A stretch of 64,000 nucleotides of DNA from assembly GCA_025558095.1 (NCBI GenBank), contig JAIVFI010000009.1:785465-849464 (forward strand), read 5' to 3'. Within the stretch, counting starts at the first letter, position 1. Each line of letters starts with the position of its first letter. The notes beneath the pieces are model-generated. The model saw only the letters and a program-made list of their open reading frames with translations. It was not told where the DNA came from and ran no database searches. Positions 27,840 to 64,000 of the stretch are shown piece after piece. The position numbers were made by a program, and so were the translations under genes. The DNA comes from Hyaloraphidium curvatum SAG 235-1 (lineage: Eukaryota > Fungi > Monoblepharomycota).

Positions 27840-29180
27840 GACGCGCGGGGAACTCCTGGCTTTTCAAGCGGGGCGCTACGTGGTGCTCCGTTTGAGAGCG
27901 TGGAGATCCCCGCGGTTCGAGCGGCCTGGAATGAACGGGGCTTCTCGTCGATGCCGTACTGCGACCCGGCTGGAACCGCCGGAACGGGGGCTCTAGCTTG
28001 AAGAAAGGTCGCCGAGATTCACCCACGAGAACGTCGGTCGGACCCGCGGCGGCAGATCTTCCGGAGGATGGGGCCTGGTGCTGCTTCCATAGTATTGTAA
28101 GAGCCGGGCCTCCGCGGGACCGAACGACGTGGCGCTCGCGCATCCATCGGTGCATGATTGCCGTCTTCTACATTTGGCAACCGTTACTTGATGCACGTCG
28201 TGCTGCCGTCGGCCCAGCTTCAGACCCTGCTCCGCCCCGCGCGGGGCACTTGCTGTCGAGCAGCATGGAACGCCGAACGGGGCATCTCGTCGATGCTGGA
28301 CTGCGACCCGGCTGGAACCGCCGGAATGGGGTTCTAGCTTGAGGTAGTTGTTCGGACATCGTTAAGCTCCAAGCACTTCGGACCCGCGGTGGCAGATCCT
28401 CTCGGGGCAGCGCCGCCGGTTGCACCTGCATCTGGACAAAGCTCACCGGGGGACCGGTCGGGCCTAAACGCTCCTCTCCATCTACTGCTGCAGCTGCCGT
28501 CGATAGCGACTTTTCGAGAGCCCCGCGGGATCGCGCCGGTAGTACATGCAGGGCTGCGGCAGGGACTGGATGCCGTCGCTGCGCGCAAGCTGGAACCGCC
28601 GCGATGGAGGCTCTAGCTCCGCGACGCAGCGCGTCGGCATCCAATCAGTGGAAGGAAGCTGGCCTTTCGGCTTTGCGGATGAATCGCTCAAGGATGTGAC
28701 GGCGTCGTGGGATGCCGGAGACGGCTCCAGGTCGGATCTGCCGTGCTCGCGGTTCTGAATGGGGCAAGGTCGCCCGGCATCTCGCTTCAAGCCTGCTGCA
28801 CATAGGAATGAGATCGCGGCGGCGCGGGGAGACGCGGCTCCCGACGAGGCGGCATTGCCTCGCCGAAGCAACCATCATCCTCTCCGCGCCATCGCTCGCA
28901 CAAGGACCGGAAGGACATCTGCAGTCTTCCGGACAGGGACGGGAGGCGCGGGACTGCGGGCTCTGCGGACGCGCTTTCGGGGCATCCATGCATAGACACT
29001 GGTGGTCCCGCGCCGTTTTCGCCCTACGGCGGGGTGTTCCACGCATTTCGTGCATGCGAAGACAGGACCTATTGCCGGACATCGCGTACCATGGGAGAAT
29101 GGGACGCGCGGCGGGCGAATGGGACCGGAGGCGCTTTCCCGTGCTTCCGGGACCTTCAGCTGCCGATCGCCGCGCGGTCC
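27840..29180 (-). repeat. Nested-palindrome hairpin array 1 (reverse orientation, more degenerate)
   Basis: Clearest copy 28945-29014: GGCGCGGGAC-N12-inner hairpin-N17-GTCCCGCGCC. Weaker copies at ~27842, ~28820 and ~29105. Confidence 0.6.
27917..28618 (+). repeat. Degenerate direct repeats, ~342-bp offset (two near-full copies plus one partial)
   Basis: CTGCGACCCGGCTGGAACCGCCGGAA..GGG..TCTAGCTTGA at ~27959 and ~28301, partial at 28569-28618; second block TCGGACCCGCGG.GGCAGATC at 28038 and 28378. Confidence 0.9.
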
Positions 29181-34649: not shown

Positions 34650-36066
34650 CGCGCCGGGCTGCGTCGCTGTTTCCAATGGGCGACGGGGAGCTGGACCCGG
34701 TTTAGCCCCGCAGACCCACACCAACATCCCATGGACCCGAGGCACACGGCGGTGATGGAAAATGCTCGGGATCTCGCGGCTTCCCTCCAATATACAAGGA
34801 GAAGGTATCCAAATGCTCGCGCGAAGGAGAGCGCGGTCGGCCAGGCTGCCGTACCCCTGACCCCATCCATCATCGGCCCCAATCGAGTTGCCGGACTCCC
34901 ATTCCTCGCCTCGCCCTCCGACCCCTCTTCGCCCGACACCGCGCCGTCCACACGCGCCGCGTCCCCCATCCGCGTGATTCGGAGCACCGGCGATGGATCG
35001 ACCTCCGCCGCCCGGACCTCCAACCGGAGCTCTTTGGTAACGATGTAAACCTCCTTCGACGTCAAGCACTCGATCGAGAGCACCACCGCGGAGCGATTGT
35101 TTCTGAATGAGAGTAGAGCAGGTCACAAACGATCACTCATACTACGGAAACCAATAGTGATCCAGCTGGACGCGGCGCGGGAGGGCATCTATCCGAGGAC
35201 GCCTCGGCCCGGGACATACTCCTGAGCCTCCCCACCGCGGCCCCCGTCAGTGGCCGGAGCAGACTGGCGCGGAGTCGAAGGTATCCGAGAATACTTCTGC
35301 ACGATCACGTCGCGGCTCGGGAGCAGGGGTCCTCGAGCGGGCCTCGCGGCGTCAACGAGCCAACGGCAATGGCGACCGCCGTCGGATCGGCGCTGGGCTC
35401 CTAACGTGAGGACCAGGTGGCCGACGCGGAAGTTCCTTCATGTCCACGTTGTCCTAGGGACGTGGACGTTCCAGATTCCATCGCCGGTTCCCGCGACGCG
35501 TAGTGCTCGGAGAGGAGGCACCACCAGCGCCTCCCCGCCGGCAGCACGTCGCGGGTCCGCCGTCCGTGCGATGATGCGAAACCACTTCGCGAGTGACCTT
35601 GGCGCCTCCCGACAAAGCCGTCCCGCAAAACAGTGGCTTGGCCCCGCCGTCGGTGCGGGGGCGGCTGGAGGCGCCGGGCTTCTCGCCGCAGTGGTCTTCC
35701 TCGAGAGGGAGCCACGCTGCGCGACCGAGAATGTGCATATCTGATGCTCGAGCGTGCCAACCCGCGCCGGCGCTTGCGTGTCATTCTTTTAGAGCCCCCA
35801 AAGGAGGTGTCTCTGACGGGAGGAGGGCCCGCGCCGGCGCGCCGTGGTTGCGGGGCGGAAGCCCGAAGGGGCAGTGTCGCGGCGGACTGGATGCGAGCTA
35901 AGCGGCGCCCCATTTTGGAGTGCCGCTTATTGCCGGAGACTGCCACGCCCCGTCAAACCCGTCCGTTGCCGCCGCCCGACCCGTGATGGCCCCCCGGAGT
36001 GCCCGCGATGGATGAGTCAACCCGCCGTCTCAGAACCCCCTCCGCCACCCTCCCTCCCCTCCCCGC

Positions 36067-37065
36067 ATGCCCGACGCGTCCCGCGGCGCGCCCCGAACCT
36101 CCTCCGCGTCGTACACCCTCGCCCTCTCCGCGCTCGCGCTCCTCGCCGCGCTCCTCCTCCGCCCCGCCCCTCCCCGCGCCGAAATGTCCGGCGACGCGTT
36201 CGCGCACTTCGCGGGCAACCTCGCGCTCGCCCACAAGGTGCTCCGCCGCGGGGTGCACCAGATGGAGAACAACGCGCCCAAAGTCGGGGAGGCCGACGTG
36301 CCCGCGTTCGTCGGGTACTCCCTCGCCTTCCTGGCCAACCTGAAGAGCCACCACGACCAGGAGGAGCAAATCATCTTCCCCGCGCTCGACAAGGCGGCTC
36401 CGGGACTGGCGGCGCGGCACGAGGAGCACGGGGTGCTCGCGGGCGCGATGGGCAATCTGGGCGGGTACCTGGAGGGCGTGAGGGACGGGAAGGAGCCGTG
36501 GGACCACGAGCGGTTCGCGGAGGTGCTGTGGAGGGTGAAGAAGGTCGTGCTGCCGCACGTCGACGCCGAGGTGCGCCGTTCCTCCCTTCCGCCGGACGTG
36601 GCTGACGCGACGCGTTGCACCGGAAGGAAGAGGACCTCTCCCCCGCCGACTTGAAGTCTGGCGGCGTCGGCCCCGACACCATGGCGGAGCTGAACAAGGC
36701 CATGGCGGCGCACGGCAAGAGCCAGCCCAACAAGACCGTGTACGTCCCCTCGTTCCTGCTCCCTCGCTCTCGCTGATGGTTCGGGGCAGCGATTTCGCCT
36801 TCATGATCGCGCACCTATCCGCGTTCGTCCCCCGTTCCCTCCGCGGGACTGCACGCTGACTCTTCGTGCCCGACCGTGGCAGGGACGAGCGCGCCGCGTT
36901 CTTCGCCAAGGCGCCCTACTTTGTCCGCGAATGGATGTGAGTCCCTGCTTCGCTCGCGGAATGGAGTGCCGGGGAGCTGACCATTCGCGGTGCGGTGGCA
37001 GATTCTGGAGCTACACGCTGTGGAACTGGTCGTGGTGGCGGTACGCGACGACGTCGGATGCGTGA
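36067..37065 (+). CDS. Hemerythrin/HHE cation-binding domain protein
   Basis: AHKVLRR, SHHDQEEQIIFP, EEH and PHVDAE-EE; several short introns; alternative start at 36184. Confidence 0.85.
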
Positions 37066-37329
37066 GGCGTGGGGTCGGAACGGGACGGGCGCGGGCGGCG
37101 CGGGACGGCTTGGAAAGCTCATGGAGGACGGCGTCGGATTCTCGTATCGCAATCTGTTCACCTGCAGAACAATGTCTCTTCATTCGCGAGCCCGCAAAAG
37201 TCCACCATGCGTCCGCCGAACTAGGTCCGCGGGTCCGTTATCGCCATCCGCGCGGCGCAGATCCCGGAGATCGAGCCCGATCGGGGGTCCACGTTCCGTC
37301 GTTCCGGATGACCGGCCATCACGGATCGG

Positions 37330-39150
37330 TTCCTGCGGCGGCTCTGTACATCGACGGCGATATAGGAGGGATCCAGGGACGCCTCCGTTCGTGGCCGCGC
37401 CGTCCGGAGCCGCCCCGTCCGATTCGGCCCCGAAACCCCAGCTCGTCCGATCCGGAGAGGCACGGACCTCTTTGGACTGATCGAGAGGCATCCGACGACG
37501 CTTCCTCAGGGCCCGAGGCGTGCGCGCCGGCCCGAGTCTGCCGCGTTGCAGAAAACGCATCCAGGATGCACAATGGTTGCCGCATGAATGAAAGCTGAGC
37601 GCGCCCGCGCGTCCCCGTCCTTGGCCGTCCGGATGCGACGACGTGTCCTTCCGTGGGGGTGCCCGCGGCCTGTCCTGCTGCTGTTATCGGGTGCGATGCC
37701 ATTGAAGCGGCGCGCCCAATTGCGTTGCGAACCTGGACTGGCCGAGGGCGCCCCACAGAGCGCAGCACTGGCCCTCTTGCTCCGAGGGCGCGGGAGTTAG
37801 CAAACGACCCGCGGGGGCGTCGACGCCTCCGCGCTCGCAGCCTTCCTGCGCCCCCCGGCTACCGTCCCCGTCCGTGGCCGGGAACAGACCGGCGCGGAAG
37901 AGAGTTTTCGCGCATTTCGAAGGTATCCGAGAATACTTTCGATGCCGTCCGCGTCCGCGCCGGCATGGCCGACCGATGCGTCATCCCAAAGCCACACCTC
38001 CCTCCCGTCGTCCCGCGGTCCAGAAGTGGCCAGGACAGGTGCGAGCTTGGGCTTGCATGACCCTGCTTTGGGCGGCGCGAGAGGGTTTTCCTCCATACGG
38101 GGGCATCCTTGAACGATCTCCGTCCTGCGCCTCTGGATATAGGGAACCCCCGCGAAACCACGGCCCCCAACCGCCTTCCCTTCGTTCGTCGTCTGGTCTG
38201 TTCGCGACAGTCCGTGCCCGCGCCGGCCGCGCCCGTGCCGTTCGTGCCGGCGCCGCGTCGATCGTTCCCCCGCGTTGTCGCGGGGCCTCACCGCCCGGAA
38301 CCGTTGGCGTACCGGCTTTGTCGCAGTTAGTTGCTCCAGACGAAAGTACCTGGCACGCTGCGGGTGGCGCGGGATGCGCACAGGTCAGACTGGAGGGCTT
38401 CCCGGGATGCCCCGCTCCGTGCCACTGGCCGTCCGCGCCTCGGGTTTCGGGTCCTCGTCCCGGTCCCTCAGCCCGGCAGGCGCAGATCATCGGATTCCGA
38501 TCACATCGGAGGCGTCCGAAAATACCTCCGAAGCCATCCGCATTGATCCGCGCCGCCCTGCATGTCGGGAGCGAAGCCCCAAAGTTCCCCTCTTCTGGCT
38601 ATCCTGACGTCCTTGCGCTTTTTGTTTTCCGAGCCCGAAGTAGGTCGACTGCTGGCATCCTAGGGTGCCTTCGCGTCCGCCGTCGTCCGCGCCCGCCGGC
38701 CCGACAGATGCGTGACCCTATCAGCCACGTGCCCCCGCCTCCCCGTCCGCGTCCTTGTTCGGATCCTTAAGCACGCCGGCTCGGAGCAATGGGAGCCGTG
38801 CAAGGAAGTATCAGGCGGAGACACCTCCGCGTCCCTCGCCATCCGCGCCGGCCTGCCGGACCGCCACGTCATCGGCCAAGCAGCACGGCACCCTGCCCTC
38901 CCGCAGCTTCCGGTGATTGCGACGCCCGTTGCGCCGTTAGTGACGTCCCCGTGGTGGTCTGCGGCAGCTTGGGGAGCCGAGAGCGATGGGCATGTCCCGC
39001 CGCCCGCCCCACCATGGAGGTCTCGAGGCCTTCCGGCCGGCGGCCGCACGCGCCGCCCGAGGCGACGCGTGCAGTCTCGCTGCGCGACTTGACGGCCCCG
39101 GACACCTGAGGTCGGGCTGCGGGGTGTCGTTGGACGCCCTCGGGGGTCGC
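37330..39150 (+). repeat. Nested-palindrome hairpin array 2 (~12 copies)
   Basis: Clear copies at 37889-37963, 38366-38439, 38475-38557 and 38775-38852; others near 37366, 37485, 37813, 38099, 38654, 39016 and 39121. Confidence 0.8.
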
Positions 39151-39192
39151 GCAGAGTCGGACGGTGGTTCACCTTCGACAAGGGCTATCTAG

Positions 39193-39412
39193 TATCAACC
39201 GCCTCGCCTGGATCCGCGCGCACGTCACCCTAGGGCGGAGCTGCATCGGCTTGAACCGGCTCAGGGAGGCGTTTGCGGCGGTGGTGGAGGAGCGGCCGGC
39301 GGACGTGGAGCGCATGTGGCAGCTCGGGATCGTGCTGACCAACATCCCGGGCCGGGCGGCGAATGCCGTCGCGGTGCTGGAGAGGGCGGATGCGCTGGTG
39401 GCGCGGCGCTAA
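39193..39412 (+). pseudogene. TPR-like coding fragment lacking a 5' end
   Basis: AHVTLGRSCIGLNRLREA...MWQLGIVLTNIPGRAANAVAVLERA; no ATG. Confidence 0.5.
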
Positions 39413-40030
39413 TGGATGCCAGGAGGGTGGTGGCGGCGGCCTGATGGTTTCCGTCCGATGTATGTCGTTGGAATGTTTACCGTATTCGATGCGGGCGTGT
39501 CACGACTGGCAGACTGGGCGGGGTTCGCACCGGCAAAGAGGTGCCCGCGATAGCGCAATGCACCCGGTAGTCCGGTCCCTACCGGCGACGCGGAGCTTCG
39601 CAACGCCAGCGACCATCCGCACCACCCCGGGCTCAGGAGTCCCGAAAAAGCGACGTTGCTTTACGAGCGGCAGGCATTGCAGCTGTGGAACCAGCCGCCA
39701 GTGTCCGGATGCTGGAATGGGGTGGTTCGCAACCAAAGTTGGCCGCCGTAGGGCTTCGCGGCGGTTGGCTTCCGCTCCGCCTCCGCCCGCTCCCCGCCCA
39801 AGCACGCCAAAGCCGCGGGGCCACCGGCGGAAAGTGGGCGACGAAGCAACCACTTTATTTCCTGATGGGTTTCGTCGAAGCAGCGGCCGGAAACGGCCGA
39901 TTTCTCGGCTTCTGTTTTCCGCACGAAGTGGCCGGATTGGTCTGGGCCCACGGTTCGGCCGGCCGGAATCGGGCCGCCGATTGCCAATAATTGCACCGCC
40001 AAACAAACGGAACCGAAACCCTTCGAAAAG

Positions 40031-40753
40031 ATGCGTTCCGCCGCCGCCGCCGCCCTGCTCGGGCTCTGCGCCGCCCTGCTCGCCTCCGCCGCGTGGGCCC
40101 CCGCCACGCCCCCCGCGCGCGGGTGCCGGCTGACGCCCGATGCGACTTCCCGCCCGCAGGCCCATCGCCGACGAGCTGCCCGCCATCGCGGAGGACGGCC
40201 CCATGGAGCGCGCGATCTTTGTCCGCTCGTGCAGCGACTGCGTCGGCGAGGACGCGTATTGGTCTGCCAATCGCACCGCCGTTCCACCGCCCACGGTGCT
40301 GACGCGCCGCCTCCCCCGTCCGCGCCGCGCAGCGAGTTCAACCACCCCGACGCCACTCCCGACGCCCCCCTCGCCTGCGTCTCCCACGGCACCGACCACG
40401 CGCTTTACCGGCGCTACGAGGACCTCAACTGCCTCTCCCGCCCAGGCATCAGCGACAAGCACTACGAGGGCAACCTCGGCGTCGTCGTCTGCTACAACTT
40501 TGTCGTCAACGCCTCGGGGGTTACGTTTAACCAGGGCCAGGGCCCGTGCCCCTTTGGTTCCGGCGGCGGGCAGAAGATCTCCACCCTGTTCCCCACCGCG
40601 ATCACCACCAGCGCCCCGGGAGCGGCGGTGTGCATGGCATCGTACGCGCCATTCATATTTGGGGACAACTGCAACTCAGTGACGCAGTACTCGGGCTTGA
40701 CGTGCCCCGCCGCCACGAGCTTCGTGTTCAACATCACCGTGCCGTTCGCCTGA
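40031..40753 (+). CDS. Small secreted Cys-rich protein
   Basis: Signal peptide MRSAAAAALLGLCAALLASA; two introns; about 10 Cys. Confidence 0.7.
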   Translation: MRSAAAAALLGLCAALLASAAWAPATPPARGCRLTPDATSRPQAHRRRAARHRGGRPHGARDLCPLVQRLRRRGRVLVCQSHRRSTAHGADAPPPPSAPRSEFNHPDATPDAPLACVSHGTDHALYRRYEDLNCLSRPGISDKHYEGNLGVVVCYNFVVNASGVTFNQGQGPCPFGSGGGQKISTLFPTAITTSAPGAAVCMASYAPFIFGDNCNSVTQYSGLTCPAATSFVFNITVPFA

Positions 40754-41180: not shown

Positions 41181-41524
41181 TGAACGATGATGGGGCGCGT
41201 GAAGAGGCCGACCTCGGCCCGCACGTCGATGCGGACGGCGCCAACGGTGCGGACGGTGCCGAAGTGGGCGAAGCGCAGCGGCGCGGTGAGGGTGACGGCG
41301 GTGCCGGAAAGCGAGGCGATGGTGGCGACGTCGCGGTGTTCCATGTCCACGTCCGAGGTGGCGATGACGATCTGGTCGCCCGCGGCCCAGCCGGCGGCGC
41401 CGGCGACGGAGATGGTGGTGGCACCGGCGGAGACGTCGGTTGTCAGCTTCGTCCACCTGGTCCGCGGGGCGCCGTGCATGTGCAGCTGGCAGCCGTCGAC
41501 GGCGAACACCTTTGCTCCGAGCTC
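41181..41524 (-). pseudogene. Isolated fragment of a G8/fibrocystin-L/CEMIP-type protein
   Basis: LHMHGAPRTRWTKL...GWAAGDQIVIATSD...LTAPLRFAHFG...RAEVGLFTRPIIVQ; flanks do not continue the domain. Confidence 0.75.
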
Positions 41525-41685
41525 CGCCACAATGTCACTCGGGCCACAGCATCGGACCCGCAGGCCTCGAAAGCAGCGCCACGCGGCACAGCGGCTCGCT
41601 CCGGGTCGATCGCAAGCGGGGGCAGCGATTCCAGCCGCGGCAATCCATATTGTTCGCTACACGTGTTTCCCCGATTTCCGGTCCT

Positions 41686-42270
41686 TCACGTGCACCTGAT
41701 CACCGCCGGTTTGAGGGCGTTGTTGAGCCGGGCGTAGGTGTCCCCCTTCGAGGCGACCTGGACCACGGGAATGCAGCTGAAGTTGCCGGAGGCTGTGTAG
41801 GCCGAAATGAACTGGGTTGCGGTCACCTTGCCTGTCTCGCACTTGGCGGGGTCGGAGGGGATTAGTGACACTGTCGGCGGGCCGGCCGGAATGCCCCACC
41901 TGGTAACTCCACTGCCCGCCGGTCGAGCTCCTGAACTTGTAAATGGCTTGATAGGCGTTCGAACCGAGGCACTTGTAGCTGAGGTACACGCCGTTCTCGG
42001 AGGAGGTGGGGGTGGCGACGCCCCCCGTTGACGACGCGTAGCCCTTGGCGTTCTGCACGAAGACGTAGGGGAGGGCGGGGTCGGCGAAGGATCCCCAGAC
42101 GCCCGCGGCGAAGGGCGGGCCACCGGTCTTGGGGAAGGTGGGGGGCTGCGGCACGAATTGAGGGGAGGGGGTGCGGGGCGGCTTCGGAAGCTCACCCCTC
42201 CGTTGTTGGCGAGCGCGAGCGGCACAAAGGCGAGCATGGCGGAGACAACGAGGGCGGAGAGGCGCAGCAT
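41686..42270 (-). CDS. Small secreted protein
   Basis: Signal peptide MLRLSALVVSAMLAFVPLALA; two introns; 4 Cys in the mature part. Confidence 0.7.
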   Translation of the reverse strand: MLRLSALVVSAMLAFVPLALANNGGVSFRSRPAPPPLNSCRSPPPSPRPVARPSPRASGDPSPTPPSPTSSCRTPRATRRQRGASPPPPPPRTACTSATSASVRTPIKPFTSSGARPAGSGVTRWGIPAGPPTVSLIPSDPAKCETGKVTATQFISAYTASGNFSCIPVVQVASKGDTYARLNNALKPAVIRCT

Positions 42271-42534
42271 GGCGGCGTCGTCGGGACGGACCGACCGTTG
42301 CGGAAAAGTGCGACGTGGGGGACGTGGGGGATCGAGTCCGAAATCGGACGCGCCGTGCCAAGTGCCTGGCAGGTTGTCCCCACTTGCGAACCGGGTTCAC
42401 CTCGTCAGTGCCATGCATCGGAGATAACTACCATTGTGAGCCGACTGGCCCTGCCCGACCCGGGGGCGAGGTATGCAATGGAGGTCGAGTGGGGACCACT
42501 AGGAGAGGTTGGGAATGAACACAGCCCTCGCACG

Positions 42535-42708
42535 CACAGGCCTCCCACTGCTTACGCGACGTTTGCTCGTGATGCCGGCACGCCGTTTCCGTGGGCGGCG
42601 ATGCCGTTGCGAGCGGCCGCCCACAGTCAGAGAAGGCCCGAGCCACCGCATCCGGCAAGCCGGCATCACGAGCAAACATCACACGCCGAAAGCAGTGGGA
42701 GGCATGTG
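42535..42708. repeat. 174-bp fold-back element (MITE-like)
   Basis: Arms GCCTCCCACTGCTT/AAGCAGTGGGAGGC and GTTTGCTCGTGATGCCGGC/GCCGGCATCACGAGCAAAC; inner stem GTGGGCGGC/GCCGCCCAC. Confidence 0.85.
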
Positions 42709-42775
42709 TATCCAGTAGGCACATCTCGAAGGTCGAATCGCACGTAACACATTTCGCGGGCTCCGAAGCCCGGTA

Positions 42776-45700
42776 CTACCAGTTCAGCCCGGCCACTGCG
42801 ACCCGAGGCAGGACGCCCGGGATCGTGTACTGCGGCAACCATCAGCAATCGAATAACTCCATCTGCCCATTTGAAACACTCACAGCATCTTTGAAGATGA
42901 TGGGCGACGAAGGCGAGCGCACGTAGGTCTTCTTGGCGTAGGTCCTCGCCCCGCGGAAGCAGGTGCACCCCGTGTCGCGGAACCCGTCGTCGCAGGAATC
43001 TGTCGTGGCGGCCCCATCAGCGACACCACCGCACGGCCCCGCAAGCGCTGCTTACCGCAGCACGACTTCCTCCACCTGCAACGCCACCTCCTGCACCTCA
43101 GCCTGACGTGGCAGCACCCGCACCTCTTCCTCCTCGTCGCCGCGGGGCGGAAGCACAGCGCGCCCAGGTCCATGTAGTCGTCATCGCACCGCTCCCAGCA
43201 CACGGGGCCGATCCCGTCGAAGCCGGAGCGGCAGCGGGGATAGCACAGGCCGCCCTGCTTTTCCTGGCCCGAGGGGCAGGGGTCGTCCGAGTCGCGGGCG
43301 CAGGTGACCCTGTGAAAGGGCGACGCGTAAGCATAGCATCGCACGAGATGGATCGGCGCGCAGTACCCGAGATCTGTCCACCGCGACGGGCAGTTCTGCC
43401 AGCATATCCCCAGGACGTTCGTGTACCCCGCGCGACAGCTCCCGTAGCAAAGTATCCCCTGCAGGTTCGGATACGACGCCGGGCACCCGAAGGTCGCGCA
43501 CAGCCCCGAATTGCACCTGTGGTCTCCGGGGCAGTCCCAGTCCCTGCGGCAGAAGTAGAGTGAGAGCGGCTTGCCCAGGGCGCGGAAGGTGGCGACGATG
43601 GGGAAGCCGGTTCCGGAAAAGGGTCCCCCGACGGAAAAGCACGCGTCAATCCGCGAGGGGAGCGAAGGGATGTACATGGTAAGGATTTTCCAGGCCACAC
43701 CGAGCTGCGGCAGCGCGCCCGTGCCGTCGAGGCACACGCGGAAGCCCCACCCCGCCGGCGACGCGTAGATGTCGAGCTGTCCCGAAACCCTGACGCCGCC
43801 AAAGATCTGGTCGATAGGGTCCGCGAGCAGGTCGCCTATCTGCGGCATTGCCTGGAAAAAGTCGCCCAGATCCGACGTCAGGGATGTCTGCAGGGCAAAC
43901 TCCCAGTCCGAGGGGGTCAGGTACCGGACCACCGTGGCGCACGTGGCCGTGGCCAACCCCGACAGGTCCATCTCGACCATCCCGTCCAGCAGGCTGGCGG
44001 AGGGGGCCGCGGAGACCTGTACCGCCAGCGCCACGTCGACCCTCGCGAGCCCGTTCCGCCGGGGGTCCGAGTCGAGGAGCACGATCCCGGACGAGGCAAA
44101 AGTCAGCGCCACGGGCTCCAGGTCGAGGGTGATGCTCGCCGTGCCCTGAAAGTAGGTCTGTCCGCTGACGACCACCGAGCGGGTCCCGTGCGGCGTCCAG
44201 AACTCGCTGACGATGCCCAGCGCGTCCGAGGTGACGGTTCCGTCGAGGGCGAAGCCGGCGAGGTCCAAGCTGACGGTTATGTTGATCGGCGGCTCGGGCC
44301 AGAGGACGGTGGTCTCGACGCCGGCGAAGGCGAAGAGGTACTCGTTCCGGCATCTGCGTGGACCGTCAATGAGAGCCTTCCAAATCAAGGCGAAGAGACC
44401 CACGGATTCATCGCCGCCGCGATCTGCATGTTGGGCGCGTCCTCCGGGTACTCCACCCCCGGCACCTGCGTCGTGTAGAACCCCAGGACGTAGTACAACT
44501 CGTCGACCGCCGGGAGCGAGGCGAACATCTCGAGCCACTCCTCGACCTCGTCCCCCGGCAGAGGGGGGCGGGGGATGCGTGAGACCCAGGACGCGAGGGG
44601 GTTGGAGCCGAGGGTGTCGAGGTCGGAGCCCTTGAACGTCTAGCGGGGCTGGTCATCAGCGTCCTCGCGAAGGGAAGAGGGAAGGTGCGTTGCCCACCAT
44701 GCTGCAGATAGTCGCCCCGGCCCTCGCGCCGAGGAACCTTCCCAGCGGGAACCAGCCGAAAAGGTTCCCAACGCCGGGCACGTCGAGCCGCAGGGCTGAG
44801 CTCGCGGCGTCGAGGGCCGAGAGGGCGAACCGGCACCCGTGCAGGGGGCAGGCCGAGTTGTCGGATTGTCGGCGGAAGAGGGCGGAGAGGCGTGATGCCA
44901 GGGTCGGGGGTGGAGCAGTATCTGCGTGGGAGGGTGATGTGCCGCGCCTGACGATCTGCGGGTAGCTCCGGGCTGAGGGGACCGTCGGCGCCCCGGCGCC
45001 GGCGGTGAGGTTGACCCTGTCCCTCCTGTAGATCTCGTACGCGTACGGGAACAGCGTCGCACTCCCCTCCAGCACCGCCGTCCAGTTGCCCCCCCGATCG
45101 CACGGCGCCGAGGCAAACACCCGCAGCAGGTAGGACAGCGCGGGGTCGTCCTCCGCGTCCTCGCCGTACGGCAGCTCCGCGCGGCATCCCGCCAGAACCC
45201 GCACCTCGGAGCGGAGCTCCAGCTCGCGGGTGATCTGGGCGCACGTGCCGTTCAGGCCGCGGGACAGGTACGTCCCCGCGAGGAGGAAGAACACGGGGTC
45301 GTGGAGCTCCATGCGGTCCCCGTCGCCGACGTGGGCGTAGCCGGCGGGGCAGGGGAACGTGTCGTTCTGCGAGAACTCGGGTGCGGCGCGGGCGGCGGCC
45401 AGCATGCCGTTGGCGGGGGATGCCTCCTCCGCTTTCCGCAGCTCGATCGCGGGCAGCTTGACGTCGAAGCTCGCCCCCACTTGGACCCGCACCGCCGGTT
45501 CTCCGGGAGCAAGACACCGCGTCTTGTTCGCCCCCATCTCCACCCTGACTCTCGCCCCATCGGCGCCCACGGGCTCCGCGCACACCCCGCGCATGGCGAA
45601 CCGCCACCCCCCGTCGTCGAACCCGCACCGCTGCCCCGCGCGCTCCCCGATCCCGAGCTCGCGGAGCACCGCGTCCCTCGGCCGCATCGCCCCGTCCGCC

Positions 45701-46922
45701 GGAGCAGCGACTCCGTCCTCCTCGTCCCAGGAGCGCTTGGCGGCCGCCAGCACGTCCAGTAGCGAGCTGCGCACCCGCGAGGCGAAGGCCGGGTCCTCGA
45801 GGACGAAGGTGGGGGAGATGCCAGCGACGGGGGGGACGGGGCAGGTGATGGCGGGGACGGCGGCGACGAGGGGGGAGGGGGAGAGACGGCCGAGGGCGTC
45901 GGCGGTGAGGGTGAAGAAGGGGGAGGAGAGGGGGTTGCTCGCCGAGACGACGGCGAGAGTTTCGTTCGGCCTGCGGGGGAAGGGGGGTTAGTGGAGGGCC
46001 ACGGGGAGACGCCGGGCATGGCGCACGGGAGGAAGACGGAGAAGCTGAAGGAGCCGTCGGCGAGAGTGGTGTTGGCGCCAATAAGGTCCGGGTCCCTGGC
46101 CGCACGCGTCGTCAACCCGGGCAACGCGACCATCCTGCGCAGCTGTATCGCGACGTTGGCAAGGGGCGGCTCGCCGGCCTCGAACCTGTAGTTGGCGTTG
46201 GTGTCGTTGAAGATGCGGCCGGCGACGAGCTGAAGCTGCTGCCGCACTGTGGCGGTGCTGGTGGTGCGGCGGGTGGCGGTGACGGTCCTCGTGCGGGTAA
46301 CGTAGGCGGTGAGGGCGCGGTTCGTGACAGTGACGGTCGGGCGGGCTGGGCAGCAGTAGCGCAGCGGGCCGGAGGGCGGGGCCGGCGTGCCCCGCGTGAC
46401 GTTGGCAGCTGCGGGGCACGGCGGGCACACATTGCGGCGTTCCAGCTCGTGGTGGCGAAGCGGTGTGCTGTCGAAGCTGCCCTTGGGCGCGTCGACCGAT
46501 CCGAAGTCGACGTCCCCTAAGGTCGAGTCCCCGGCCAGCGAATCGCGCGCCCCGAGCCTCTGGCCCACGGCGACCGTCGTCGTCACCGTTGCCACAACGA
46601 CAATCCGGGTCGTCGTGCGCGTGCGCAGCCGCGTCGACGTGCGGCCGGCCGCGGTGCGCGTGACGGGGACGAGGCCGCGCCGCCCGCAGCAACACGTCGC
46701 GGGGGCATAGTTGCAGCCGGGGCAGCTGTAGCGGGGTCAGCAAAAGCCAGCGGGGACGGCGGCGAAGGCTTGAGCCCACCAGAAGGGAGCGGGGGCCCAG
46801 CGAGGTGCGGTGTTTGGGGCGGCCGAGCCCGCGGGGGCGGGGTCCTGCGCGGAGGAGGAGGAAACGCACGCCGCGAGCACCAGAAGCACAAAGGCGCCCG
46901 CGAAAGCAGCCGTGTGCCTCAT
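42776..46922 (-). CDS. Large secreted multi-exon protein: Thr-rich modules, SdrD-B-like domain, C-terminal Cys-rich repeats
   Basis: Signal peptide; GRIFNDTNANYRFEAGEPPLANVAIQL...TTLADGSFSF; LCYPRCRSGFDGIGPVCWERC-type repeats. Could be two genes. Confidence 0.65.
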
Positions 46923-47409
46923 TGCTCTTCCCCGGAATGATGGTCCCCCGTCAGCGGCCGACTGCGGGAGGTCAGCACCGCCCTGCGCATCGTCCCTTCC
47001 TCTAGCCGCCCGCTGCCGCCCGGTGATCCCCCATCGCAAGGCGGTTGGTGGCCAAGGCCTAGGGCCGAGCCTCAACGCGGTCAAAGTGGGCATCGATCTT
47101 CCTTTCCGATCCGGCTTGTCCCGCAGACCGGCGTAGCAAGACGTACCGTGGGGCGCGCACGGCGCAACGGCACGCTCTAGCCGCCCGCCGTCCGTCCCTC
47201 ACAGCCCCATCCCTCAGCGGCGAATGCAAACCAGCCGCAGCATCCCGTTTCAGGCGACGGGGGCGGAAGATGAGGGGGCAGCAGGCCGTGCGCACCGTCC
47301 CCCTGGCTCCTAACATGTCCACACGAAGCAGACTGAGGAGCAGGGTTATGCAGTGGTGAGGCATTTGGACGTCTCCACGATTGGCGCAGGCTTGTGCTTC
47401 AAGGATCTG

Positions 47410-48660
47410 GTGGGCACGTCCGGGGACGTCTTCGCGCCAGCCTGAGTCCTGCGTCTTCCTCCGTGGCCTCTTGGACCCCGTCCAATCTGGTTCGACAATG
47501 CTGCAGCCCATCGTCCCATGTTGGCTGCAACGGTGAGGGTGGCGCGGGATCTCACTCCTCGCACGGGAACATCCGAGGACGTCCCCGCGTCCCCCCGGTC
47601 CCCGCGCATTCCCGCCGCGTCCTCGACCCGGTCCGAAATCGGGCAGGCGTTGAGGCAGGAGAAGGTGCATCCCAATACGTAGTCGTCCACGTCGGCTCAC
47701 CGTCCGCGGAAAAGTTCGTACATTCGGGCGGCGCGGGTCGTTCATGATGTCGGAGGGGGCATCGCATCCAGGGATGCCTCCCAGTTTCTACCGTCCCGCG
47801 CCTCTCGGTTCAAGTCCTTGTCGGGGTCCAGAAGCATACCGAACATGTACTTGGGTTTCGAGACGGAGGCGTCCGCAGATGCCTCCAGCGAAGTCCGCGT
47901 CCGCGCCGGGGCCTCCGCACCGATGACCTAATCCCCGACGCCACATCGTGTCCAGCTACTCAAAACGTGCCCAGCGTCCGCGTCAGCAGCCGTTCGGAAC
48001 GACCCCGCTTGCTTCGGGCGGCGCGGGAGGGTAGTGTTCAGGGCGGGGGCATCCAGCGACGCCTCCGTTTCTCCCACCGTCCCGCGCTCTCCGGTACAGT
48101 GCCCCGAAAAAGACCGGCGCGGAATGCGCGTCCTCATCCGCGTACTGCTGTCGTGCCGGCGCGAAGTCTTCCGCTAGGTCGCGGAGGAATCATAAGATGC
48201 CTCCGTGTTCCGAGGCGCTCCGCGTCCGCGCCGGCCTGCCGGTCCGCGAAGCCGCCGCATGGACTCCCGGTCCGGCCCCAGCAAGCATGACCTGCGTTCT
48301 CATGTCGACCGGCCTGGTGTGCTGGCTGGGCGGCGCGCGACGGAGTCGCGGCGAACCATCGTGGGGGGCTGAGCTTCGTCCGAAAACCTGTCCAGGCCAC
48401 AGGCGCCACCGGCACGAACCTGGTGGTTCTACGGAGGAGTCCGAGGATGCCTCCGGGGCTCCGTTGCTAGTCCGCGCCGGCCTGCCCGAGTTCGAAAGCC
48501 TCCCCGTCCGCCGTCCCGCGCCGCCCCGTCCGCGTCCGCGTCCATGTCACTGAGGCTCGTCGCGAGGACACCATCCGGTCTTTGTGGAAGTGTCCGAAGG
48601 CGCCTCCAGCGCAAACTGCGTCCGCGTCGGCCCACCGGACCGATGCGTCACCGCGGAAGC
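47410..48660 (+). repeat. Nested-palindrome hairpin array 3 (~9 copies)
   Basis: Copies at 47541-47607, 47730-47802, ~47864-47909, 48020-48087, 48155-48235, 48409-48480 and ~48554-48632. Confidence 0.85.
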
Positions 48661-49071
48661 CCCCCCGTCCCCGGGCTCCCCGGCATCGTCGAGGCCCCCG
48701 GCGCGCTCGCCACGACCCGTCCGGAAGCCCGCATTCCCAGCGAGGTCCTCACAGCTGCTGCGGGCGGCACACGGGGCACCCGCCGCCCGCGCAACGGGGA
48801 GGCGTGGCCGTCCGCCGCCGGGCCGTGCGCACCGCCCTTGCGCGGCGCACGCGGCCCCGGGTCGGAGCGGGACGGCCCCGGGAGGCCAGGGCGGGGCGCA
48901 GGCGGACTTCGGTGTGTTGGGGCTTGCGGCGCGGTGGGTCGCGCGCGGGGAGACGACCCATCGCGTCCCCCGATCCCGCCCGACTCGCTCGGAAAATCGG
49001 AAACGGGCGTTCGAATTAAAGCACCAGCACGCGCACATCCACCATGCCCTGATCCGCCCCTCCTTTCCCTG

Positions 49072-63787: not shown

Positions 63788-63869
63788 ACCCCGACACCCG
63801 ACATCCCGACCCGACCATGGACCCCAACGAGATGCTCGCCCAGATGGCGACGCAGATCCAACAGCAGGG

Positions 63870-64000
63870 TTAGGTTAGGTTAGGTTAGGTTAGGTTAGGT
63901 TAGGTTAGGTTAGGTTAGGTTAGGTTAGGTTAGGTTAGGTTAGGTTAGGTTAGGTTAGGTTAGGTTAGGTTAGGTTAGGTTAGGTTAGGTTAGTTAGGTT
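63870..64000 (+). repeat. Telomeric array (TTAGG)n
   Basis: 24 perfect TTAGG, one TTAG, then TTAGGTT to the window end; G-rich strand runs outward. Confidence 0.95.

Follow-up and report, generated by a model that had tools for sequence, protein, structure and literature searches.

A small, partly decayed family of nested-palindrome hairpin arrays in the nuclear genome of Hyaloraphidium curvatum

Among described systems, the nearest fungal analogue of the arrays reported here is the set of mitochondrial double-hairpin elements of chytrids and fission yeasts (PMC10085805), which resemble them in being GC-rich, intergenic and potentially mobile, in occurring in early-diverging fungi and in having no known cognate enzyme. 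Those elements are mitochondrial and short and adopt a double-hairpin fold, whereas the family in H. curvatum is nuclear and carries one nested hairpin per tandem unit of about 150 bp. TIGR stem-loop arrays (PMC12045711) also consist of transcribed tandem hairpin units, each with two variable segments. The H. curvatum units, in contrast, have no fixed short spacers or C/D boxes, and a scan of a subset of the ORFs neighboring the arrays gave no Nop-domain (Tas) gene. The RAYT-associated REP, REPIN and BIME elements are short GC-rich imperfect palindromes in intergenic clusters, as are the units here. They differ from the H. curvatum family, which lacks a tetranucleotide foot and a Y1 transposase, lies in nuclear eukaryotic DNA and amounts to about 30 copies at two loci, compared with the hundreds of copies of REP. 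Integron attC arrays are likewise made of polar two-stem sites with an asymmetric unpaired middle, and likewise gain and lose units. The unpaired segments of attC are 5-6 nt, compared with 11-22 nt in H. curvatum, where an R-box consensus, cassette ORFs and strand bias are all absent.

Two further comparisons bear on what the arrays might be. Clusters of miRNAs and fungal milRNAs offer tandemly duplicated hairpins of about 75 nt within a transcribed non-coding block, in genomes with Argonaute genes, and all of this is matched here; in H. curvatum, however, conservation and apparent pairing are lowest in the mid-stem, and the strand-specific G-U signature is absent. Degenerate satellites and minisatellites with dyad symmetry are similar in their period of about 150 bp, A/B higher-order dimers, block duplication, gain and loss of units and, on the contig studied here, near-telomeric position. 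The difference is that the H. curvatum arrays are too diverged for Tandem Repeats Finder, with only the dyad arms surviving, and are short (0.1-1.8 kb).

H. curvatum is a freshwater fungus, and its genome assembly comprises 31.9 Mb in 55 contigs. The stretch analyzed, referred to below as the window, is the final 64 kb (64,000 nucleotides) of an 849,464-bp contig (C9), and coordinates are those of the window unless another contig is named. A literature search of incomplete coverage found no description of such hairpin arrays in this organism. Our analyses define a family that is small, partly decayed, statistically solid and apparently undescribed.

Unit architecture and extent of the family

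A sequence-only reading of the window had proposed that the interval 37330-39150 holds an oriented array of nested-palindrome hairpins, and this was borne out: the interval (array 1, Table 1) is a succession of nested dyads with conserved arms and free spacers. In each unit an outer core, GGCGNGG/CCNCGCC, encloses an inner stem, GGRGGCRTC/GAYGCCYCC, with a 4-nt loop. The spacers between the two stems measure 14-22 nt on the left and 11-20 nt on the right, where most units have 11-14 nt. Only about 4 of the 13 or so slots are complete, 5 being partial and 4 decayed, and several units lack the left outer arm while still keeping the right one. The monomer as quoted is a majority consensus, and its exact inner consensus occurs 0 times in 37330-39150. 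Both worked examples in that reading, 37889-37963 and 38475-38557, are present, the latter with slightly tighter bounds. In the former, the inner stem is an A-T-rich variant and the conserved tail runs to about 37986.

The units are polar, with a basic tandem unit of about 150 bp, and fall into two alternating types, A and B, of which the A-type has a conserved tail of about 22 nt beyond the hairpin. Loop centers in array 1 are 105-294 bp apart (mean about 147 bp per slot), and the short and long spacings add up to about 290-300 bp per A/B pair. Internal matches in the arrays at offsets of 153, 156 and 290 bp show head-to-tail periodicity with unit-to-unit homology, as expected of a degenerate tandem repeat. 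Tandem Repeats Finder found no array at 37330-39150, where the units are too diverged and fall below its threshold, and Rfam searches at gathering and E-value thresholds gave no real match.

Table 1. Arrays, individual units and adjoining genes in the window
Feature	Position	Strand	Remarks
Array 1	37334-39160	+	About 13 unit slots; mean period ~147 bp; short and long (A/B) spacings alternate
B-type unit	37786-37853	+	Tetraloop lost, leaving a spacer-less inner palindrome
Complete A-type unit	37889-37963	+	Outer stem of 10 bp without mismatch; inner stem variant; spacers 18 nt (left) and 11 nt (right); folding z -3.4
B-type unit	38074-38131	+	Right spacer deleted
Complete B-type unit	38366-38439	+	
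Complete unit	38479-38554	+	Outer stem extended to 11 bp with one A-C mismatch; folding z -4.0
A-type unit	38620-38720	+	Left outer arm absent; right arm and tail kept
A-type unit	38775-38875	+	Inner stem degenerate; tail present
Array 2	47380-48900	+	Collinear paralog of array 1, ~60% identity
Array 3	28815-29180	-	Three units, inverted relative to array 1; detected by a model built without them
Two-unit remnant	35166-35300	+	Paralogous to 37787-37938; both left spacers missing
Hemerythrin HHE-domain gene	36067-37065	+	4 introns confirmed in RNA; upstream context, outside the element
TPR-like orphan coding fragment	39164-39412	+	Directly 3' of array 1; weak assignment; context

Nested dyads are enriched in the arrays. 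A strict nested-dyad scan, which is blind to sequence, gave 2 matches in each cluster compared with 0.02-0.03 in shuffles (p=0.003 each), corresponding to 1.2 per kb inside the arrays and 0.08 per kb outside, an approximately 15-fold difference that shuffled sequence hardly ever gave. Folding z values of -3.4 to -4.4 against dinucleotide shuffles were obtained for 4 of 6 full-length units that were folded from arrays 1 and 2, while the units at 38360, 37333 and 47536 did not fold at that level against the same shuffles; folding energies were similar on both strands. Left spacers are 54% GC compared with 66% in the linkers (p=4e-4), and ApT is raised within the arrays.

The family is larger than the sequence-only reading had stated, as it also includes array 2, array 3, a remnant pair and two arrays on contig C29. 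Arrays 1 and 2 align with a global score of 426, compared with 217 +/- 37 for random windows, and the offset between them shifts from about 9.95 kb to 9.79 kb, a change that corresponds to the gain or loss of roughly one unit. The DNA between monomers had been described as largely unrelated, which is true within an array; between arrays 1 and 2, however, the linkers are homologous (z 2.2-5.0). Arrays that are otherwise about 60% identical have exact patches of 16-22 nt in common, centered on the arms, and an exact 22-mer inner hairpin is found at both 35275 and 37917. Scars of the hairpin-slippage type are the loss of the loop at 37823, a 5-nt duplication near 47755-47765, the deletion of a right spacer near 38120 and the absence of both left spacers at 35166-35300.

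The C29 arrays, found via the inner stem, are two direct copies 4 kb apart that are 88% identical at aligned sites. Their units independently show the geometry of the C9 units, and their outer stem is compensated, the central pair changing from C-G to G-C or T-A. The C9 and C29 families have the same arm consensus and geometry and no detectable common spacers or linkers. In this youngest copy pair the arms diverge as fast as the rest, with 117/132 identical positions in the arms (89%) against 1116/1273 over the whole block (88%). One of the copies contains a fresh 113-bp tandem duplication, and the homology of the other copy begins inside a left outer arm.

BLAST of array 1 against its own genome returned only itself. 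A covariance-model search of the genome, trained on C9 and C29, recovered C9, C29 and one weak C42 match among the 150 candidates scored, and the extent of the family in this genome is to that degree a lower bound. The weak match (C42:14517-14588; 33.5 bits, E 1.4), 14.5 kb from the contig start, is a possible further unit. The family thus described numbers about 30 copies at at least two loci. Pattern scans gave 0 matches in viral contigs and 0 in prokaryotic genomes, a relaxed scan gave 2 isolated singletons, and a second family was not found in the public sequence collections searched. A single metagenome match to the full consensus was obtained on a Clostridia-like contig (L034, 3230-3720). 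It is a palindrome with GTAG before it and a second inverted repeat around it, in the midst of other REP-like repeats; we take it to be a REP-like element and judge its resemblance to the consensus to be due to chance or convergence.

Covariation, strand symmetry and transcription

Arms were proposed to change together within a copy, and covariation was indeed detected in both stems (p<0.005). Watson-Crick cells numbered 150 in the inner stem compared with 133 in shuffles (p=4e-4) and 189 in the outer stem compared with 156 (p=2e-4), p values that are optimistic in that column shuffles ignore relatedness and units were chosen by consensus resemblance. The signal persists within C9 alone and when close paralogs are dropped, covariance-model pairing counts agree with it, and it collapses in slid registers.

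It had also been suggested that selection is on the fold rather than on the primary sequence. The dyad and its geometry are kept while the spacers are free, consistent with that suggestion, and spacers, loop and overall tails are at shuffle-level identity between non-orthologous units. The four arms, however, are 59-64% identical between such units compared with 30-38% in shuffles, and are conserved as sequence too. Conservation is not purely structural, since the right outer arm matches the consensus better than the left (6.6/7 compared with 5.7/7) and in several units outlives a lost left arm. Nor need covariation mean selection, because template switching during replication creates, maintains and repairs paired stems in one step and so produces covariation by itself (PMC8794818).

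A selected RNA helix should tolerate G-U pairs and purge A-C mismatches. The core stems contain 25 G-T and 21 A-C mismatches (p=0.66 against 1:1; p=0.003 against an RNA-like 3:1, a benchmark that is itself an assumption), a balance indicating that neither strand is favored as RNA. In array 1 the counts are 4 G-T and 8 A-C, while the C29 units alone lean to G-T (11:4, p=0.12). Pairing between left and right spacers is slightly above that of shuffles (mean z -0.66 +/- 0.21) and equal on both strands. Where a duplex of about 22 nt in the stem was looked for, 5 of 24 units had z<-1.64. The mid-stem appears to pair poorly and has an asymmetry of about 5 nt.

Array 1 is transcribed. It is covered by contigs from run X1, which is RNA since it splices six GT-AG introns. 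One contig extends from the 5' end of the hemerythrin gene through to 38250 and another from 38312 to 39934, so that 37002-38250 and 38312-39934 are covered and only 38251-38311 of the array is not; the contigs give neither strand nor transcript limits. No splice joints occur inside array 1 in these contigs while the flanking introns are spliced, and a mirtron or hairpin intron was rejected for array 1 on these grounds. At the two gene starts that are known, the adapter types are consistent with a stranded library. Under that assumed protocol, and from one fragment per end, there is a weak indication that a minus-strand RNA starts at 38250 and that a plus-strand RNA ends at 39934. Divergent transcription from within array 1 (38250-38312), with no tie to unit polarity, is therefore possible. 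A separate RNA contig joins 255 letters of contig C1 to a short match at 38733 in an array 1 linker, either through a short paralogous patch or as a chimera; the C1 site concerned is C1:1556597-1556619.

Origin and possible roles of the arrays

The arrays resemble a DNA repeat that copies itself and is growing old more than they resemble a proven RNA or recombination system. Our preferred explanation, to which we give somewhat less than an even chance, is a lineage-specific, ageing hairpin minisatellite in which template switching and conversion of the DNA itself drive amplification and restore the symmetry of the arms. The data show that A/B dimers of about 290-300 bp were amplified in tandem, that entire arrays were duplicated into intergenic DNA nearby in one or the other orientation, that units were gained, lost and internally deleted, and that the arm covariation is strand-neutral. 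We infer that a unit made single-stranded during replication would fold in vivo into a two-tier hairpin or cruciform, which would stall the polymerase and lead to template switching. A switch within a unit would copy one arm from the other, giving Watson-Crick covariation in one step without G-U intermediates. Switching or conversion between units would duplicate or delete them and would hold the arms near the family consensus while the spacers drift. The repeat would have no function, no dedicated enzyme would be needed today, the fixed geometry may be a legacy of recognition by a transposase acting in trans, and transcription across the array would be incidental.

The minisatellite reading is supported by the balanced mismatches, the similar folding energies of the two strands, the slippage scars, the exact arm-centered patches, the divergence of the C29 arms, the tandem duplication and the copy boundary on C29, the variable orientation relative to genes and the restriction to C9 and C29. 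It is weakened by the arm consensus and spacing kept between C9 and C29, which are hard to obtain by conversion alone, suggest a real constraint in the form of present or past protein recognition, and limit our confidence. The low GC of the left spacers, the RNA coverage of array 1 and the G-T lean of the C29 units also count against it. If the minisatellite reading is right, the family is a natural example of DNA-level template switching that mimics functional-RNA covariation, a caution for structure-based ncRNA discovery, and an additional nuclear hairpin-repeat family with no description in the literature searched.

The main rival, which we consider unlikely, is a polycistronic structured-RNA locus resembling a miRNA or milRNA cluster, with imperfect hairpins of about 75 nt and arms of 33-38 nt. 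The hairpins would lie on one long transcript, and an RNase III/Dicer that recognizes the conserved basal and apical stems would cut small RNAs out of the variable middle, to be loaded into Argonaute. This small-RNA precursor reading, one of those originally put forward, is favored by the transcription of array 1 in a run that splices introns, by at least three Piwi-domain loci in the genome, by hairpin size and unit polarity, and by the weak native pairing of the spacers. Against it, neither strand shows a G-U preference and the asymmetric mid-stem appears to pair poorly. Most hairpins are crossed without a break by the sequenced RNA, no Rfam family matches, and there is a hint from adapter polarity, with one fragment for each half, of minus-strand reading on the left and plus-strand reading on the right. 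Most unlikely, in our view, is a dual-segment array in which the two variable segments between conserved stems guide a trans-encoded protein, on the model of TIGR units, the loops of bridge RNAs or H/ACA pockets. The stem-variable-stem-variable-stem layout, the polarity and transcription, the odd base composition of the left segment and its absence from one paralog (35166-35300), and the presence of TnpB/Fanzor-type zinc-ribbon matches in the genome would fit. The segments, however, vary in length (14-22 and 11-20 nt) and diverge between paralogs like ordinary DNA, have no target match in the sequences examined or by BLAST of the genome at E<=10, and lack C/D, CCA/UG, H and ACA boxes, and no unit lies near the Fanzor matches. 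A wider claim, which is quite improbable, is that the arrays form a polycistronic system of structured RNAs in a eukaryote, one of several such hairpin-array families in this genome, and that unit-length hairpins with two variable segments are released from a long transcript to serve in trans as guides or as small regulatory RNAs. Were an RNA rival correct, this lineage, whose small RNAs appear not to have been studied, would have a polycistron of miRNA-like or guide-like type. H/ACA snoRNAs were rejected, as an H box within 20 nt and an ACA-like motif were each found in 1 of 28 units and Rfam was negative. Fanzor omegaRNA or ghost loci, which are dispersed copies flanked by inverted repeats and in which two side-by-side stem-loops at the right end of the transposon precede a variable guide, were rejected too: the units are single nested hairpins in tandem with conserved A-type tails, no model match lies near the PF07282 matches, and the literature did not support the likeness.

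Readings at the DNA level other than a minisatellite were also weighed. As in attC or REP systems, the units could be substrates of a dedicated single-strand recombinase or HUH transposase whose gene lies elsewhere or has been lost; the enzyme would cut the folded units so that they are gained or excised as cassettes. We regard this as very unlikely. The fixed two-stem geometry with its asymmetric internal loop, the gain or loss of one unit between arrays 1 and 2, the C29 copy boundary inside an arm and the REP-like nature of the sole metagenome match are in its favor. The attC and REP/HUH candidates of the sequence-only reading nevertheless failed their defining tests: attC R boxes (RYYYAAC/GTTRRRY) are not at the unit ends, where the consensus is that of the outer core; a GTAG/CGTC foot is absent, and across 28 units neither flank of the inner stem carries a conserved 4-mer; and the Y1 HUH transposase (PF01797) gave 0 matches in the H. 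curvatum genome, the control being positive in 6 of 14 genomes. There are no cassette ORFs and no strand bias, copy number is low, two runs contain no excision joints (contigs drop rare forms), and no tyrosine-recombinase integrase was found among ten flanking ORF pieces. As that reading had noted, a cognate enzyme was not found in the window. Also improbable is a cis-regulatory or chromatin element in which the arms are half-sites for dimeric DNA-binding proteins, placed about once per nucleosome, the array acting as a bidirectional promoter, an enhancer or a nucleosome-phasing array. A period of about 147-155 bp, strand-symmetric mismatches, half-sites kept as sequence without their partner, raised ApT, the possible divergent transcription and the fact that all six arrays adjoin a gene 5' end (chance about 0.18) are consistent with such a role. 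Double-stranded binding sites alone, however, do not predict covariation across the dyad, the neighboring genes are functionally unrelated, and the family is present in only two genomic regions. Among simpler candidates, a MITE was rejected (only self matches in BLAST, a family recovered at two loci, no target-site duplication by eye in the flanks), as were Helitron 3' ends (no CTRR at a fixed distance after the hairpins, by eye), a 3'-UTR element of the upstream gene, since array orientation relative to neighbors is inconsistent, and capture of spacers from local DNA (longest exact matches 9.8 compared with 9.5 in shuffles).

Genomic setting and neighboring sequences

Array 1 lies about 25 kb from the telomere-like end of C9, where a run of 26.8 copies of the pentamer GGTTA, a telomere-like 5-nt repeat, occupies window positions 63868-64000. 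It is flanked by the spliced hemerythrin-domain gene and by a gene starting near 40031. Genes adjoining the arrays encode hemerythrin, methyltransferase, kinase-like, RING-like and other products of unassigned type, and the arrays are downstream, upstream or divergent relative to them, with no fixed orientation.

The hemerythrin exon used as query is 100% identical to a protein of H. curvatum. The hemerythrin-domain protein, queried with its first exon only, had two homologs at E<=1e-8, both from Cladochytrium (51-55% identity), and its distribution among chytrid-grade fungi appears patchy by this search. No unit is present at the homologous loci of the two Cladochytrium species. The ORF immediately beyond array 1 is coding-like (82 aa) with TPR-like features, is unspliced in RNA and is not on record as a called gene; it is probably a gene remnant.

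The zinc-ribbon search (PF07282) gave matches above the cut-off at C2:397554, C2:426655 and C5:336026, together with ten weak, mostly identical dispersed matches. Within the window, a direct repeat of a different family lies just beyond array 3 (27917-28001, 28256-28342 and 28569-28618; 80-86% identical with a 27-nt exact core). Two tandem gene duplications were also seen, 28-505/837-1310 (80%) and 16227-17049/20310-21140 (73%). Finally, an imperfect palindrome of about 175 bp (42535-42708), 68% self-complementary, is located between exons of the minus-strand gene or genes at 41186-46922.
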